Translations under genes and position numbers: made by a program
Assembly: GCA_033442325.1 (NCBI GenBank)
Contig: JAWQFM010000011.1
Location: 875,575-937,151 of the forward strand
Source of the DNA: Salpingoeca rosetta
Lineage: Eukaryota > Protista > Choanoflagellata
Length of the DNA: 61,577 nucleotides
Direction: 5' to 3'
Shown: in pieces, positions 4,561 through 42,972 of the stretch
Numbering within the stretch: position 1 is the first letter of the stretch
Layout: each line of letters opens with the position of its first letter
The notes under the pieces: generated by a model
The model's database searches: none
Seen by the model: only the letters and a program-made list of their open reading frames with translations
What the model was told of the DNA's origin: nothing

Positions 4561-7500
4561 GCGCGCACACGCACAAAGGAAAGCAACTAGCCACAGCCGA
4601 CCTTGTCGCTGAAGACGTAGTCGATCTGGCCGAGCTCCTCGTTGAGGGTGGTCGTGCGGGCGACGGCGGGCGTGTCTGTCTCCTCAAAGTACATCTTCAC
4701 GTCAAGCCCAATCAGCTGGCTCTGCGCAAGTCGGATCAACTCAACGCTGTTGTGTGTGATGTGTGATTTGTGCGTGTGTGTGATGTGTGTGAGGTGCAAT
4801 GACAAGGCACATCAAACGGGCGAGCAACAGTGAAAGCACGCAGAGTAAACACAACCACAAACAACACAAACAAACAAACAACAAAACGAAACCAAGCCAA
4901 AACAAGCACCACAACGACAGCACGTGGCCAGACCTGACGTAGAGGGAGATGGGGACAAGGTTTGAGAGGACAATGAGGTACGAGAAGAACTGCAGAAACG
5001 CAATCTGGTTCGGGTTGTCCGACTGCCGGTTAAGGTACTCCATGAACCGCTGCGCACACGCGTGAGACAAAGGAGACAAGTGCATCGAAGCAGGTGAGGG
5101 TTAGAGAGAGAGAGAGAGTGTGTGTGTGTGCGTGCGTGCGCGCGCGCGTGTGTGTGATGAAGAAGGAGAGGGGGCAAGTGCGCTGACACGCCAACATCAC
5201 GCACAGACCTTCTCTTCCCTCTTCTCACTGCGCATTTCCAACCGCACTCTCCCTTCCTGCTCTGTCGTGATCGCGACGCACCTCTCCCTGTGTGCGCTCC
5301 CAGTAGCCGCTGAGGATGGCGAGGGTGACGCACATGGCAAACAAAACAAAGAAAATCTGGATCACAAGGTTGTTCAGCTGCTTGTCAATGTGCGTGCGCT
5401 TAAACCGAACACGGCCTGAATAGTGCGTATGAGAGTGGGTGCGTGTACATGTGTTTGTGTGTGTATGAGTGTGCATGTCCATGTGTGCATGTGCATGAAT
5501 AGTGAGGCACTGTGCGGACAGACACAGGGACAGTTGCACACAAGCGTGTGCGTATGGAAGACGGTGTGCAGGACCCAAGGGTGCTTGCAAGCAAAGGGGC
5601 GCGCATCGGGGCAAGCGGTTCACCAAGACATGTTGGTATTACTCACCGCTGTTGCGCATGAGCTTGGTGTCGTTGCCAGTGTACACGACGACGCCACGAA
5701 TCTCATTCGTGTTGCGAAGGCGACAGCCCTGAACACATGCACACGCGCGCGCATATACACAATGGAATAGGAGCACAAGGCACAGGTGGACAAGATGAAA
5801 AGTGTGAGACGTGAGGCGAGTGCGCGACAAACACAATACACAACAACAACTCAACAGGACCAAGTGAAGAAAAGCGCGCGAGGGAGAGAACGTGTATGTG
5901 TGCATGTGTGCATGCGTGTGTGTGCATGTGTATGTGTGCATGTGTGCATGTGTGTATGTGTGTGTGTGTGCGCGCGATGTATGTGTTGTCGCACCCTGAG
6001 GATGACGTTGTTGTTGCTGATGGGGAGCGGTTTCTCGCCGTTAACGGAGATGGAGCCATCAAAGTCGTCGAGCCTGTTGTTCGGCGGGTTGCATGACACC
6101 TCGCCTGTGGTCACGCGGAGGAGAGGGTGGGGGGGGGAGACAGAACAGGGGAATGACAGGGGCATGACGGGGTAACACAAGGGGAACAACACAAGGTCAA
6201 GAGAAGCGGAGGCATGATCAGGCCCTCGGAAACGGGGTGTGTTTGCATCGTTGAATCAGAATCAGGGGATACAACGCACGTTCGACGACCAATCGACACC
6301 GTACATGCACCGAATTAAGCAGACAGAAGAGTAGCAACATCGACAAACGCACGGACACGCACAGGCACGCACAGACACAGTCACGCACACACACACATAC
6401 ACACACACACACTCACACACTCTCACTCACTCACTCACACGCACACAGCTACAGCGGGTGCGTACATGTCATGGCAGAGAGCTGCTGTGCGGAAGAGAAT
6501 TCGCGCGTGGGCTCTGAGGCGTAGCGTTTCTTGAGGTTTGTCTCGCCATCAAGGTCTGCCGTCTCGATGTAACAGTCGTGGTCGGCCTCCGTTGTCGACA
6601 GCACAACAAGATCAGCCTGGTCCGCGGTGATGGGTGGTGGTGGGTGGTGGTGGGTGGTGGGTAAGCAATATAGGGAGGTGCGTGTGTGTATGTGTGCGCG
6701 TATGTGTGTGTGTGTGCGTGTGTGTGCATGTGTGTAAGTTGTCGTGCGATGGCGTGAAGCATGTAAGTCTTTGACACCAGACACGAAAAGTCACGCGCAG
6801 ACAGGCCACAGCAGCGGTCACCACGCATCAACATCATGGTCATCATCACGTTGATCACACGCACCGGGACAAAGTCGTCTTTTCTGAGGCGAATGATTTC
6901 TCCCACATGCACATCCTGCCACTGTGACTCCACCCACCTGTCATCGGCACATTGTGATACGTGAGCCCAAGCACACAAAAAGACAGGCAGACAGGCAGAG
7001 ACACACAGAGAGAAAGAGCTTGAGAGAGAGAGACAGACAGAGAGAGACAAAGGCAGACAGACAGAGAGAGAGACAGAGACAGAGAGAGAGAGAGACAGAG
7101 AGAGAGACAGAGAGAGAGAGAGAGACGAGCAGACAGACAAGGCACACAGAGGGAAAACAAAGAGGGAAAAGACAGACGGACGAACAGACAGACAGACAAA
7201 CAGACAGATACACACACAGACACACACGCACGCACGCACACACGAGGAACAGACACACAAAACAAAACGACAGCCGCCCTGTACATTGACACCCTTGTCT
7301 CTCCCCAACTGACTTGCTGTTGCGAAGAACGTCGATGGCGCGGTTGTTGATGGTGGCATCGCTCTTGTGGCGCTTGTAGTCGTCGTTGCCGTCCTTGACA
7401 GCGGTGACGCCGAGCACAAACACGAGCGGCAGCGCCGTGGTGATGGGGCTGAGGGAACTAATCTGCGGGATCAGCTGCAGGATGAGCTGCAACAGGAAAT

Positions 7501-31517: not shown

Positions 31518-33348
31518 CTAGAGGTCATGAAAGGAGATGAGCTCAATGTCCAGCTCTTGCAGTCCACGCTTCAGCGCGGGATCAGTGAGCACACGCAGCT
31601 CAACCACGCGGTTGTTGCATTGCGAGAACGCATCGGGGCCAGCCTGCCCACACATTGGTGATTGTTTGCAGTGGCGGCATTGTGATGGTGTGGTGGGGAT
31701 GTCAAATGAGATTGTGAGGTGAGGCGCTCAAGGAGAGCAGGTGCACGGCGGTTCAGGCGATGCAATTTGATAGGGCGGATGTTGCGGCTTGTGAGTGGCA
31801 AGTTTCACAGAGCAGGTTTGGTGATGGGTTCCTGTGAACATTGGTGGTGATGTTGAAGCGTTTGGTGTGGGCAGCCTCGCGTGATTTGTGTTGTCTTACG
31901 TTGCCGCACCCGCCAACAGGCGGAATGGCAGGATACCCGGGGTGGGCCATGAGCTCGCATGTGCGCATGCCTGATCAACACAAACATGCACACGTGCACA
32001 GAAGAAGGTGGTGATGGCACAGAGGACATTGGTGACGAAGCACGTCAGCGTCGCCGTCAATACATGCGTTGGCACAACAAGCGCTGGACATGCTTGTATA
32101 CCCACAACGCACGCACGCACGCACGCATGGGCACCTTGCGCAATGAGGGCGCGCATGTCTCGCAGGATGTCGTCAGCAGTGAGAGAGGGCCGGTCGTAGT
32201 CAAGGCCAACGAAAGCATCCGTCATGCGCAGACCGCTGGCATCAAACGCGGCACGAGTCTGCACACACACACAGACACACAGACACACAGACACACAGAC
32301 ACACAGACACACAGACACACAGACACACACACACATGCACACACACAGACACACACAGACACACATGCATACATTGGTGTAGATGACGGTGAGGTTGGGC
32401 GTTGCCAGCGCATGAGTCAGCATGACAAGCAATGCGAATGCTGCACTGATCGAGCACGAAGGGCGTACCTTGGTGGCACAGCGAACCACCCGCTGCAGAA
32501 ACGGCGAGAGTGTGGTGGAAGCGTGGTCATGATGCCGGTGGAAGCTGGGCGCGCGCACAGACCGCAGGTGCGTCGGGGAGTACTGGGCGATGGCGGTGTA
32601 GACTTGTGGCAGGATGAAGATGTGGTTGTGTGCGTCAAGGTGGCGGCAGGGGCGGCCAGTCATGGCTTGGAACGCCTCCAGCTGCGCACGAAGCTCACTT
32701 GCAACCTCCTGCGTATGCCAGCACGCTGCGCACTCGAACGCACCGTGCTTGCCATGAAACATGCCATCACCGCCAACATGGGCTGCGCGCGTGGGCTGCT
32801 GCCGCCGCTGCATGTGCGAGCGCCACGACTCAATGTCAGGGGCGCTTGCTGGGCGCCGTGACGGCGTGGACGCCGAGTGCACGACAGAGCGGGGCATGTG
32901 AGTTGCTGGTCTGGAAGGAGACGAGGGGGACGTGGTTGGAGCGGACTCGGGTGCGATCGCCGCCGGCGGTGGTGCCAATGGCGCTGATGCAGAGGACGAC
33001 ACTGATGACGACGTTGATGGTGAAGGAGGCGGTGATGTGGAGCCCGTGGATGAGAGGGAGGAAGAGGAAGAGGAAGAGGAGGAGGCCAACAGCAGCTGCC
33101 CACCCAGGGCCTGAGCCAGCGGCCTGGGAGGTGGAGGTGGTGCATGTGCTGGGGGCACTGATGGACTCCGTGCACGTATGGCCCGCTGACCGGTGTGCGC
33201 GAGTGGCACCCCTTCCGTGAGGTTGAAGTGCAAGCCGAGAGGAAGATCGACGGCGTTTGCCATTCGTGCCGCCTCTCGGCTTGCCATCCCGTTCACCAGG
33301 AGCGATGATTGTGTGACCACCCCTTGCTCAAACGCTTCCACAACACCC
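31518..33348 (-). CDS. YDJC: YdjC/ChbG-family carbohydrate deacetylase, 5'-incomplete (first exon probably in gap 33463-33562)
   Basis: GVVTQSSLLVNG, LPLGLHFNLTEGVPL, ELRAQLEAF..TGRPCRHLDAHNHIFILP, ELMAHPGYPAIPPVGGCGN|AGPDAFS...ELRVLTDP...FHDL* (TAG at 31518-31520). The N-terminal ADDFG motif is not visible. Confidence 0.88.
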
Positions 33349-33365
33349 CTGCATACACGCACACG

Positions 33366-33441
<76 letters not shown>

Positions 33442-33462: not shown

Positions 33463-33562
33463 NNNNNNNNNNNNNNNNNNNNNNNNNNNNNNNNNNNNNN
33501 NNNNNNNNNNNNNNNNNNNNNNNNNNNNNNNNNNNNNNNNNNNNNNNNNNNNNNNNNNNNNN
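33463..33562. other. Assembly gap (100 N, probably a placeholder). Other gaps: 10086-10388, 28805-28904, 34416-34595, 60870-60985
   Basis: N runs. Confidence 0.95.
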
Positions 33563-33723
33563 TGATGGATGGATGACTGCCCTGGGCAGAGAGCAGGCAG
33601 GTGGCGAAAGCAGGTCGGTAATGGTTGTACACAAGGCAAGCAAGCAAGCAACCAGGCAAGCAACCAGGCAAGCAACCAGGATGGAAGAGAGAACACACAT
33701 CCACACACATGCATGCGTAGAAG

Positions 33724-33772
33724 TTAAGCACTGGACGAAGAAGGGACTGGAAGGTGGATGAGCGGGCCACTA

Positions 33773-33843
<71 letters not shown>

Positions 33844-34686
33844 CTGCTGCTGCACAGGAGCCGTGGTGGCAACAGCGCTGCTGGTGCTGGTGCCAGGGCC
33901 ACTGCTGGGCTTGGCTGCGTGTGCAACTGATGGGGCCGCAGAGGGAAGCGAGTGTGGCACGCCATTGGATGGCGCCAGCTGCATCGGGGGAAAGTGCGGC
34001 TGCGTCGTGTACTGCATCTGCTGCGACGTGTCTGGGAACACCTGGTGGTGTGAAAACGGCGGCATGTGCGATGATGCCATGGGTGCGCTGGTGCTCGCCA
34101 TGGCAGCCGCTGCCGGCCGCGATCCCCTCGACCCTCCCCGGGCACCGCCAGCACGGGCTTGGTGGGAGCCAAACACCGACAAGGGTGGCAGCACGCCCGA
34201 CATGGCAGTTGCTGCTGATGCTGATGGTGCTGTTGTTGTGGTCGTGGGTGTCGACGACGTCGGGGCTGTGGAGGCTTGTGCATCGCCCACGTGGGCGGCA
34301 GCCTTCTCCGTGGTGCTGCTGTGACTAGCAGTGGTTGTGGTTGTGGTGGTGGTGGTGGTGGTGGTGGTGGTTGCGGTGGTTGCGTGGGCGGTGGCGGCGT
34401 CCTCTTCACTGCCGTNNNNNNNNNNNNNNNNNNNNNNNNNNNNNNNNNNNNNNNNNNNNNNNNNNNNNNNNNNNNNNNNNNNNNNNNNNNNNNNNNNNNN
34501 NNNNNNNNNNNNNNNNNNNNNNNNNNNNNNNNNNNNNNNNNNNNNNNNNNNNNNNNNNNNNNNNNNNNNNNNNNNNNNNNNNNNNNNNNNNNNNNGAATT
34601 CCTCCACATTCTTATTTTTCAAAAAGATCAATAAATTTTGGATAATCATTATGCATAGTAATATAGGTAAAAATAATTTTTAAATA

Positions 34687-34757
<71 letters not shown>

Positions 34758-35365
34758 GGGGGTTAAGGTTGGGGGTTGGGTGAGGGGAGGAGATGTTTGC
34801 AAACAGCAACATGTGTGTGTGTGTGTTGTGCGTGAGCAAAACAGCACGACGAGTGGTGCAAACAACACACGATGCACACAACGACACATGTACATACATA
34901 CATACATACATGCGTACATACATGCATATATACATAAACGATGCACACCATGCATGACACTGCACAGGCATGACTCACGCGAGCAAGCTTGGCAGCGGCG
35001 TAGAGCAGCGTGTCCTGGTGAATGCCATCTTCCACGCCAATTGCCGACAGATCCTGACCAGTCAGCAAGAACATGCATGCATGTGTGTGTGTGTGTGCAA
35101 CAGTGCAGGTCATTCCATCAGCGGCTGCAGGCGGATGTGTATGTGTGGGGGGGGGCCAAACAGGGGAGAACAACGGCATGAAGCGAGAGCGCTGAGGACA
35201 CAAAGCAGCGTGCGTGCGTGGATGCACGTTGTTCGCGGCTCACGTTGAGGTCGAGGTGCTCCAGGACTTCAAGGTCGTCAAATCCGCTGCCCATAAACAG
35301 CGGCTGATACTGCGTCAACCCCAGTCGTGCCAGGAACCTGTAGGAAATGCACAAGTGGTGTTGTT

Positions 35366-35407
<42 letters not shown>

Positions 35408-36720
35408 GCGTGTGTGCGTGTGCGTGTGTGTGTGTGTGTGCGTGTGCGTGTGCGTGTGCGTGTGCGTGTGCGTGTGTGTGTGTGTGCGTGTGCGTGTGCG
35501 TGTGCGTGAACGAGCAGCCGATGCGACAAGCACAACACAAGATCACCCCGACCACACCAACACCACCGCCGGCTGTGTTGTTGCTTACTCCGGCACGCTG
35601 GCGACATCGTGGATGTTGTCGGGAATGACAATGGCACCTGCAGACCGATTCCACGGAACACTGATGTGATGCACGCACATCAACCATGTGTGCATGTGTG
35701 TGCATGTGTGCGTGTGGGTGGTTGTACATAAGTGGAAATTCACGAGAGTAATGCGGTGATCTAGAGCGAATGCATGTGCACCCAAGCGCCAACAACAGGC
35801 CCTTACTTGACTTGGTTTGTCTTGAGAGCCTCTGCAATGCGGCGGATAATGTGGTAGTTGGCGCGGCCTTTGATCTGCAAAAAAAAAAAAAAAATCCAAA
35901 ACACATTGCGCGTGAGGGCACACATCGGTCCGCACACACGCACACACGCACACACACAAATGTATTTACACACACGCACACACACATGCACATACAAACA
36001 CACAAATTTACACATACACACACATACACACACAAATGTATTTTCACACACATACACACACAAATGTATTTTCACACACATACACACACAAACACACATA
36101 TGTCCACATATACGCACACACACACACACCATGGTTTGCATCGCTTACGTTGAGGGAAAACGTATCGCTGTCTCTAAGGTCTGCATCCTGGCGTTTGCAG
36201 ATGGCGGTGATGCCACGCACCTTTCCTTTCTTCGCCGGATGTCTCACATCTGTACAACAGATAACATACGTGCAAACCAAGCAAATCAAATGCCAGTGAA
36301 TTAAACAACTTGCATGGCTTAATACTGCTGCTACTGTTGCCAAAAAGTACTCAACAAACAACATCGCCAGCCTCCTTCTCTCCCCTGAGCCGCTCGTTTC
36401 ACCCCACCACCACCATCGCCAATAGCACCACCATCTTCGGTGTCCTCCTTCCCCCCCCCCTTCGTTTTGCGATTGCGCACCTTTTCCCTGGTGCGACTTG
36501 GCGGCGCGCTTTGCCTGCTGGCGCTCCATGTTGCGGCAGTCCCGCGCAGGGCACGCACACACGCGCACGGCAACAGAGACCTGTGCAAGCAGCTGCGCAC
36601 TGCACACGCAGACGCCAGAAAACATCATGCGCACAAGCATGTGAGCATGCTTGCGAAGTGGAAGGGTGTGTGCAGTGACAAGAATGTGGCGCACAAGGAG
36701 CATTGGCAACGACTGCCACG

Positions 36721-36773
<53 letters not shown>

Positions 36774-37983
36774 GAGAACATGCGGACCCGTTGATGAGGG
36801 TGAAGACAATGTCAACGGGACGTCTGTTCATGCCACCGCTGCAGCTGGAGAAACAGCGCATTTTCAGCAGCAGCGTCTGGCACAGCAGGCCCTCTGCAAC
36901 GCAGCAAAACAGAGGGGAGAGGTGCAGCCAGAGGGCAATGGCGACACAATGCGGCGGTGAGTGCTCATTGGGGCTGAGGGGCGTGTGTAATTTGCGGGTG
37001 ACAATGTCAAAACACGAGCAGATGAGAGAGCAGAGACGAAGAACAAAATGAGGTGCAAACGCACCATCTTTTGATCGCTCAATGGGAACAACGAGATACG
37101 CCCGACCCTGTCAATTTCAGCACAGAACGTAATGATGGGGCATGTGACGCAACTGTGAGCAACAGCCAAGCGAGAGAGCAAAGGGGCGGGATATAGAAGC
37201 AGATGGAGATGGAGAGGGGAAAAGGGACCACGAACTCACATATGAAAGCACATGAACACACACACACACATGAACACACAAGAAAACACACACATACACA
37301 CAGATATGAAAACACATGAAAACACACACACACACACTCACGCTGGTGTCCATGTGATAGTCTGCAGTTGGCATCGTCGTCTGCAGCACGTGCTCAGCGT
37401 GTGCTACATGCAGTTGTGTATGTGTGTGTGTGTATGTGTGAGCGAGTGGAAGGATCGGAGAGAGGGGTTGGAAAAGGACAACTGTGACACCGACGTGGAG
37501 CGACGCGCACGTAGGTACACAAGCAAGCAGAACAGCTGTCCACACCCGCAGTGGCTCACGTGCAGTATCCTCTGCCAGATGCGTTGGGCAGCGAGGGATG
37601 GGGTGGGAGGGATCCTTGGAGAACTGCAGCTGAACATGCAGTTTCGCCGACTCTGGCACCGACTGGTTCAACGCACGCAAGGCAAAGCACCGCACCACAA
37701 CCACGCCACACAATATCGTGAGTGCAGGATCGCAGCGCAATCTGGACCAACGACAAAAAACGAGTGCATGCAACCAACCCATGCGGCTCAACACAACGCG
37801 CGCGTGCGCAGCCGCGCAAAACGCACCTCGGATGATGTGATTTGGACAGGGAACACCTGGTCAATGTTGGTGAAGAGCTGGTGCAAGGTGCCGCTGTACA
37901 TCCACGAGCTGGCCTTGGCACTACCGCGGGTGTCTGCCTCCATGTTGAGGTTGAGGGTGAGCGCCGACGACTGCTGCTCGTGG

Positions 37984-38028
<45 letters not shown>

Positions 38029-38230
38029 TGGTGATGGTGCTGCTGATAGTGCTGCGGCTCCCCCTCTTGCTGCTGCTGCTGCTGCCGCTCCTGTTGTTGA
38101 GCTGCGACAAGCCCTGTCCTGGTTGGCGATCGCGTCAGGTTCAGAAACTCCTCCGAAAACTGCACCGCAGTGTGTGCGCGTGTGTGTATGAGAGAGAGAG
38201 AGGGGGGGGGGAGGGAGGTAGGTAGGTAAC

Positions 38231-38265
<35 letters not shown>

Positions 38266-38828
38266 GCACGCACTGTGCACACACACTGTGCACACACACT
38301 GTGCACACGCACACACGCACACACACACGCACAGAGCAACGCACCCCGGGGACGTCGGAGGCGGCAATCTCGATGTTGGTGGTGCTCTCTGCCCACGAGA
38401 GCGGCGCAGAGGCATCAGGCGTCACATGGCGTATAAACGAGCTTGAGCATCGCGTCAAGCTGCCACAGTCACGCAATCATGAATGGGTGGTCACATCGTG
38501 AGTATTCATCGTAACGGTCCAACACACACACACACACACACACACACACTCATGAAGTCTTCGTTACCTCGCATGTACAAACAAACGCGCGCACACAAAC
38601 ACAAACACAAACACAAACACACGCACACGCACACACACACGCACGCACACACGCACGCACACACACGCACACACACACACACACACACACACTCTCTCTC
38701 TCTCTCTCTCCATCTGACCTTGGAGCTCGGCCGAGGGAGGAGATCCAGGTTGAGATGGACTCAGTGCTGGATCCTCGCAGGAGGTTGGCGAAGGAGGCTT
38801 GGCGACTCAGCCGGGCGTGTCCAGACAT
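33724..38828 (-). CDS. p53/p63/p73-family transcription factor (DNA-binding domain + oligomerisation domain + SAM domain)
   Basis: Phase-consistent splicing gives [88 protein letters not shown] (DBD); DTFSLN|[18 protein letters not shown] (OD); [31 protein letters not shown]|[17 protein letters not shown] (SAM). The Thr/Gln-rich tail after gap 34416-34595 is assigned by inference. Confidence 0.93.
33773..33852 (-). repeat. Coding (CAG)n(CAACAG)n polyglutamine tract in the p53-family gene tail
   Basis: Read directly; lies in the ORF that ends at 33724. Confidence 0.8.
36716..36773. repeat. (CCACGA)n hexanucleotide repeat in an intron of the p53-family gene
   Basis: About 9 tandem copies, read directly. 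Confidence 0.85.

Positions 38829-38993: not shown

Positions 38994-42972
<3,979 letters not shown>

Follow-up and report, generated by a model that had tools for sequence, protein, structure and literature searches.

The 61,577-nucleotide stretch of Salpingoeca rosetta DNA analysed here (contig JAWQFM010000011.1, positions 875,575 to 937,151 of the forward strand; hereafter the window) contains on its minus strand what is very probably an intact, annotated gene for a p53-family transcription factor, XP_004994590.1, and this reading best explains the locus as a whole. The gene, its domain layout and its conserved residues are already known from RefSeq and from print. The window is GC-rich eukaryotic DNA with introns that are packed with microsatellites, and translation of the minus strand yields short open pieces that form successive parts of a p53-family protein. 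A p53-like factor in choanoflagellates, the unicellular organisms most closely related to animals, is of interest in a species such as S. rosetta, in which gene knock-outs are possible.

Gene structure and identity

Splice sites placed by coordinate define 13 minus-strand exons from 38828 to 34979. All 12 introns among these exons are canonical GT-AG introns of 146–274 nt, and the phases agree at each of the 12 junctions. Together the exons add up to 1401 nt and read through 467 codons without an internal stop. The longest exon comprises 111 codons, so that the protein is invisible in any single open reading frame (ORF). These observations agree with an earlier note on this DNA, which had proposed that about 13 exons splice into a protein that no single ORF shows, with phase-compatible junctions up to the assembly gap at 34416–34595. 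The note also called the gene hidden in its small exons, which is true of single ORFs but not of the databases, because the protein is already RefSeq entry XP_004994590.1. Exons 1–13 (34979–38828) contain no N and all lie above the gap edge at 34595; the DNA-binding domain (DBD), the oligomerisation motif and the SAM domain are therefore independent of the gap.

The 467-residue model is identical to XP_004994590.1 from the first methionine through exon 13, apart from a few differences that resemble slips in the machine reading of a PDF. Exons 1–13 together with the two tail exons of RefSeq give exactly 613 residues from the window coordinates. The RefSeq ATG lies at 38828, and 33724 is the final base of the RefSeq stop codon. 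Bartas et al. (2019; PMC6981761) print the sequence of XP_004994590.1, describe it as 613 residues from a gene of 'just over 5 kbp', and list it among three S. rosetta p53-family entries. Their CDD assignments place P53 at residues 151–319 (E 1.2e-40) and SAM_2 at residues 404–465 (E 1.5e-9), and the published ranges fall on the same residues of the present model. Choanoflagellate p53 proteins with three domains had been described before (Joerger et al., 2014, for Monosiga; dos Santos et al., 2016; Aberg et al., 2017), and these publications and that of 2019 confirm the statement in the note that the family is known from choanoflagellates. A literature search for XP_004994590.1 found the 2019 paper alone. 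Two protein searches returned no match and are uninformative. The word-index search used the tail without its repeats and covered proteins of 126–400 residues, a range that excludes a protein of 613 residues. The exhaustive search of representative proteins with exons 8 and 9 (72 residues) used a database that apparently lacks XP_004994590.1, so that its blank result says nothing about novelty or about transcripts.

The DNA-binding domain

The DBD is spread over exons 3 to 8. Pfam and PDB (phmmer) searches were run with stop-free pieces and exact exons, one at a time, and the P53 profile (PF00870) has a cut-off of 27 bits. Exon 3 (37827–38159, 333 nt) encodes an F-x3-F-x2-L motif, a poly-Gln/His tract and the start of the DBD, and matches profile positions 3–61 with 29.6 bits. 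Exon 4 (37560–37662, 103 nt) matches positions 49–88 (17.8 bits), exon 7 (36788–36893, 106 nt) positions 133–163 (38.3 bits) and exon 8 (36481–36599, 119 nt) positions 166–192 (24.3 bits). Exons 3 and 7 thus each exceed the cut-off alone. Profile positions 88–133 correspond to two exons that are too short to score by themselves: exon 5 (37342–37403, 62 nt), which lies between loop L2 and strand S5, and exon 6 (37065–37107, 43 nt). Both keep the phase and are part of the published protein. When the whole assembly is scanned with PF00870 in six frames, the same exons are recovered.

Alignments to solved structures place the functional residues. The last 38 codons of exon 3 align with the p73 and p63 cores, with Lys157 at the position of human p53 K120; the whole exon retrieves only poly-Gln matches from the PDB, such as the TATA-binding protein. 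Exon 7 encodes loop L3 and matches p53, p63 and p73 cores with E-values down to 1.3e-6, with Cys269, Ser272, Cys273, Gly276, Arg279 and Arg280 as the equivalents of C238, S241, C242, G245, R248 and R249. Exon 8, which encodes strand S10 and helix H2 followed by a basic linker, matches human p53 cores (E 6e-4) and retains R273, C275, A276, C277, R280, D281 and R283. Exon 4 alone finds no match in the PDB and is placed by its Pfam match only, which falls exactly on this exon; Arg210, Cys211 and His214 are read here as the equivalents of R175, C176 and H179. All four zinc ligands are consequently present, C238 and C242 by alignment to human p53 and C176 and H179 by reading exon 4 at the Pfam match, as the note had claimed. 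The structure alignments also retain eight of eight DNA-contact residues (K120, S241, R248, R273, A276, C277, R280 and R283), which include the six that the note had named from this set (K120, S241, R248, R273, C277 and R280).

In solved p53-DNA complexes, zinc-ligand and contact residues of this kind serve the recognition of p53-type half-sites. Because the equivalents of all eight contact residues are kept, the S. rosetta protein most likely binds such half-sites, with a C-A/T-A/T-G core and purine and pyrimidine flanks, as predicted from sequence.

The oligomerisation motif and the SAM domain

The region C-terminal to the DBD is encoded by exons 9 to 13. Exon 9 (36149–36249, 101 nt) carries the basic linker and the β-strand of the oligomerisation motif, and exon 10 (35807–35874, 68 nt) carries the hinge glycine, Gly367 (equivalent to G334), and helix 1. 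Exon 10 alone matches positions 12–32 of the Pfam P53_tetramer profile. The sole PDB match of its 23 residues is a p53 tetramerisation fragment (E 0.5), to which the hinge glycine and helix 1 align. Helix 1 ends near residue 385 and the SAM domain begins at residue 404, with a spacer of approximately 18 residues between them. The motif comprises the elements of the primary dimer, namely strand, glycine and helix; both the second helix of p63 and p73 and their long spacer before the SAM domain are absent.

Exon 11 (35589–35660, 72 nt) encodes this spacer and the start of the SAM domain, in agreement with the published SAM_2 range. Exon 12 (35244–35337, 94 nt) contains the central SAM helices and matches SAM_2 positions 12–42 (17.9 bits), and exon 13 (34979–35053, 75 nt), which carries the last SAM helix and ends in phase 0 at codon 467 before a GTGAGT donor, matches SAM_1 positions 32–63 (13 bits). 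Each match is below its cut-off alone; the two are colinear on consecutive exons and follow the oligomerisation motif, the domain order of p63 and p73. In the PDB search with exon 12, SAM domains are the top 14 of 17 matches (best E 0.009), and the weakest three are Toll-like receptor chains. The closest solved SAM domains are the generic ones of ANKS1A, Caskin, SAMD5 and SHIP2. The description in the note of a SAM domain as in p63 and p73 is therefore correct for its position after the oligomerisation motif but not for its nearest relatives.

The matches to P53, P53_tetramer and SAM fragments all occur in gene order on one strand. The earlier note had suggested scans with these three profiles, and exon by exon all three gave matches in colinear order, those to P53_tetramer and SAM below their cut-offs; together with the published CDD ranges on XP_004994590.1, this supports its claim of an architecture of DBD, oligomerisation domain (OD) and SAM domain. 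The alternative that these exons match by chance or belong to a decayed pseudogene can be regarded as refuted. The small size of the individual exons is the only point in its favour, and it is countered by eight colinear domain-fragment matches on one strand, by P53 fragments that sum to about 110 bits, and by a gene without stops or frame breaks in which every intron is canonical and the functional residues are all kept.

Counter-evidence and the oligomeric state

Several observations weigh against the assignment as a functional p53-family factor or against parts of it. Within the DBD, G279 is replaced by Ala and R282 by Cys, and the H178 equivalent is also changed. The CDD match of P53_tetramer on the published protein (residues 357–381, across the exon 9/10 junction) is weak (E 0.0135; PMC6981761), and the helix exon, scanned without the strand exon, reaches 19.1 bits against a cut-off of 20.7. 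Of the OD with a hinge glycine that the note described, the glycine and helix 1 do align to the p53 fragment, but the motif is short and falls below the cut-off. Read directly, the OD helix has Asn where p53 has R337 and Thr where it has L350, so that a stable tetramer is not assured. The last 146 residues of the protein rest on an island of 853 bases between two gaps. Finally, a literature search for a functional study or experiment on XP_004994590.1 found none.

These features bear on the oligomeric state, for which the sequence leaves the tetramer that the note had proposed and a dimer at roughly equal odds. A dimer of the CEP-1 kind, in which the one-helix motif packs on the adjoining SAM domain and the protein binds half-sites or spaced half-sites, is a credible alternative, although we hold it at rather less than even confidence. 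The short distance from helix 1 to the SAM domain leaves no room for the second helix that p63 and p73 need, and the usual spacing between OD and SAM domain in vertebrates and molluscs is 90–100 residues (Joerger et al., 2014). The same authors likened the Monosiga homologue, with its shortened motif and a SAM-like region close behind, to the C. elegans protein. The Thr at the L350 position points in the same direction. Conversely, the motif retains the β-strand of the tetramer core, its hinge glycine and most of the hydrophobic positions in its helix, and human p53 forms a stable tetramer although it has no second helix.

For the protein as a whole, we propose an N-terminal part that would be disordered and contain a poly-Gln tract, followed by a zinc-stabilised p53-type DBD, the basic linker, the short oligomerisation motif of β-strand, hinge glycine and one helix, and the SAM domain shortly behind it. 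The protein would read p53-type half-sites and would bind DNA as an oligomer in which dimers are assembled through the strand and helix motif, and the adjacent SAM domain may stabilise the oligomeric assembly. The usual guess for the cellular role of a p53-family factor is a stress or DNA-damage response.

The C-terminal tail and the assembly gap

The tail of the protein lies on the island at 33563–34415, with N runs on both sides (33463–33562 and 34416–34595); further N runs occur elsewhere in the window. The place and orientation of the island depend on scaffolding alone, and the join of the tail to exon 13 is unproven. In the RefSeq model, intron 13 (34325–34978, minus strand) measures 654 nt if the estimated gap is counted, or 2.4 times as much as the longest among the other 12. 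Exon 14 (34202–34324, minus strand; 123 nt, 41 codons) has a TAG acceptor and a GTCGGG donor and is needed for the length of 613 residues. It encodes a short alternating Ser/Thr/Ile stretch in low-complexity sequence, which may be chance. Exon 15 (33724–34041, minus strand; 105 codons and the stop) encodes a Ser/Pro/Ala-rich tail with a poly-Gln end that matches the published end, and its codon score is strongest in this frame (96 bits).

Within intron 13, a block of 97 bases at 34596–34692 abuts the gap and has a GC content of 21%, compared with 55% in its surroundings. It terminates in an EcoRI site at the edge of the gap, occurs only once in the 55.4-Mb assembly and could be the end of a foreign or chimeric read.

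The RefSeq tail could be wrong, either because a long frame codes from within the gap, because an exon is hidden in the gap, or because the island is misplaced and the protein has another end behind the SAM domain; we consider this rather unlikely. The tail is isolated between two N runs, intron 13 far exceeds the 146–274 nt of the other introns, and the block of low GC content adjoins the gap. From the gap edge at 34413, a long frame with 229 open codons extends to the stop, and its score upstream of exon 14 is positive; the remaining two frames of the minus strand are largely open as well, so that all three are open in much of the island. Codon position and codon score, tested in the three frames, are ambiguous over the first 370 bases of the island. 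Upstream of exon 14, the crude codon score is in favour of the long frame, and over exon 15 it strongly supports the frame common to both models. Over exon 14 itself, however, it favours the RefSeq frame, which is the best there (28.8 versus 11.8 for the long frame). The RefSeq tail also joins at valid GT-AG sites, and the island contains no competing plus-strand ORF.

A second p53-family gene

The whole-genome scan with PF00870 locates a second P53 locus of the assembly on contig 20 (segment 788500–796500). The exons of XP_004991396.1 and XP_004991397.1 lie there on one strand and in order, and flank a gap of 100 N (segment positions 4701–4800). XP_004991396.1 ends in the N-terminal half of the P53 DBD, and XP_004991397.1 starts in the C-terminal half and continues with an OD-like motif and a strong SAM domain (66.6 bits). 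The published CDD table flags the former as C-incomplete and the latter as N-incomplete (PMC6981761). The two entries look like one gene that is split by the assembly gap. Because the half-DBD entries stand in order astride the gap and carry these incomplete flags, the number of p53-family genes in S. rosetta is most likely two instead of three.

The N-terminal region and a candidate activation motif

The N-terminal region begins with exon 1 (38719–38828, 110 nt), which starts with the ATG shared with XP_004994590.1 and ends in phase 2, and continues with exon 2 (38345–38459, 115 nt), which is phase-compatible, has a CAG acceptor and a GTGCGT donor, and encodes no known domain. The Pfam P53_TAD profile for the transactivation domain (TAD) does not match the N-terminal exon piece at E-values up to 1, nor does it match the paralogue on contig 20. 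Published work likewise reports no TAD (Bartas et al., 2019, PMC6981761; Aberg et al., 2017), and the published view is that the TAD first appears in placozoans.

One F-x3-F-x2-L motif is present at residues 76–83 (38136–38159), at the exon 2/3 junction and in an acidic N-terminal context. The paralogue contains one F-x3-aromatic-x2-L motif at residues 36–43, also in an acidic context (segment positions 5949–6590, minus strand). This spacing is that of the TAD1 helix of p53, p63 and p73. The chance of the motif in shuffled sequences is 0.011 and 0.025 in the two genes, for a pattern that was chosen post hoc. If both were true activation motifs, which appears improbable, a four-part plan of TAD, DBD, OD and SAM domain would predate animals, and this would contradict the first appearance of the TAD in placozoans.

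Neighbouring genes

Upstream of the p53-like gene, the plus strand at 38994–42800 appears to encode a cytoplasmic class II aspartyl-tRNA synthetase. This gene stands head-to-head with the p53-like gene, with approximately 165 bases between the start codons. The downstream neighbour at about 31900–33400 on the minus strand reads like a YdjC-type carbohydrate deacetylase, and the N run at 33463–33562 separates it from the stop codon of the p53-like gene.

Comparison with known p53-family proteins

XP_004994590.1 is the same gene, with a shared start, 13 exons, 467 residues and stop, and no difference in exons 1–13. A close counterpart from another choanoflagellate is Monosiga brevicollis XP_001746020.1 (King et al., 2008; Joerger et al., 2014; Aberg et al., 2017), which likewise has a DBD, a short one-helix OD and a SAM-like region close behind, with no recognised TAD; its sequence is clearly diverged, and orthology was judged by eye. 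The α forms of vertebrate p63 and p73 share the order of DBD, OD and C-terminal SAM domain, as well as the zinc ligands and the DNA-contact residues. Compared with these proteins, the S. rosetta gene lacks a TAD recognised by hidden Markov models and the second OD helix. The spacing between OD and SAM domain is approximately 18 residues in S. rosetta and 90–100 in vertebrate p63 and p73, the SAM exon is nearer to generic SAM domains in the PDB than to the p63 and p73 SAM domain, and the gene spans 5 kb compared with more than 250 kb in vertebrates. In C. elegans CEP-1, the SAM domain directly follows the oligomerisation motif, as in S. rosetta, a comparison that was printed for the Monosiga homologue. 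The Pfam SAM_CEP-1_C profile finds no match in the S. rosetta gene, in contrast to this shared layout, and the S. rosetta DBD is far nearer to the vertebrate consensus than the CEP-1 DBD.

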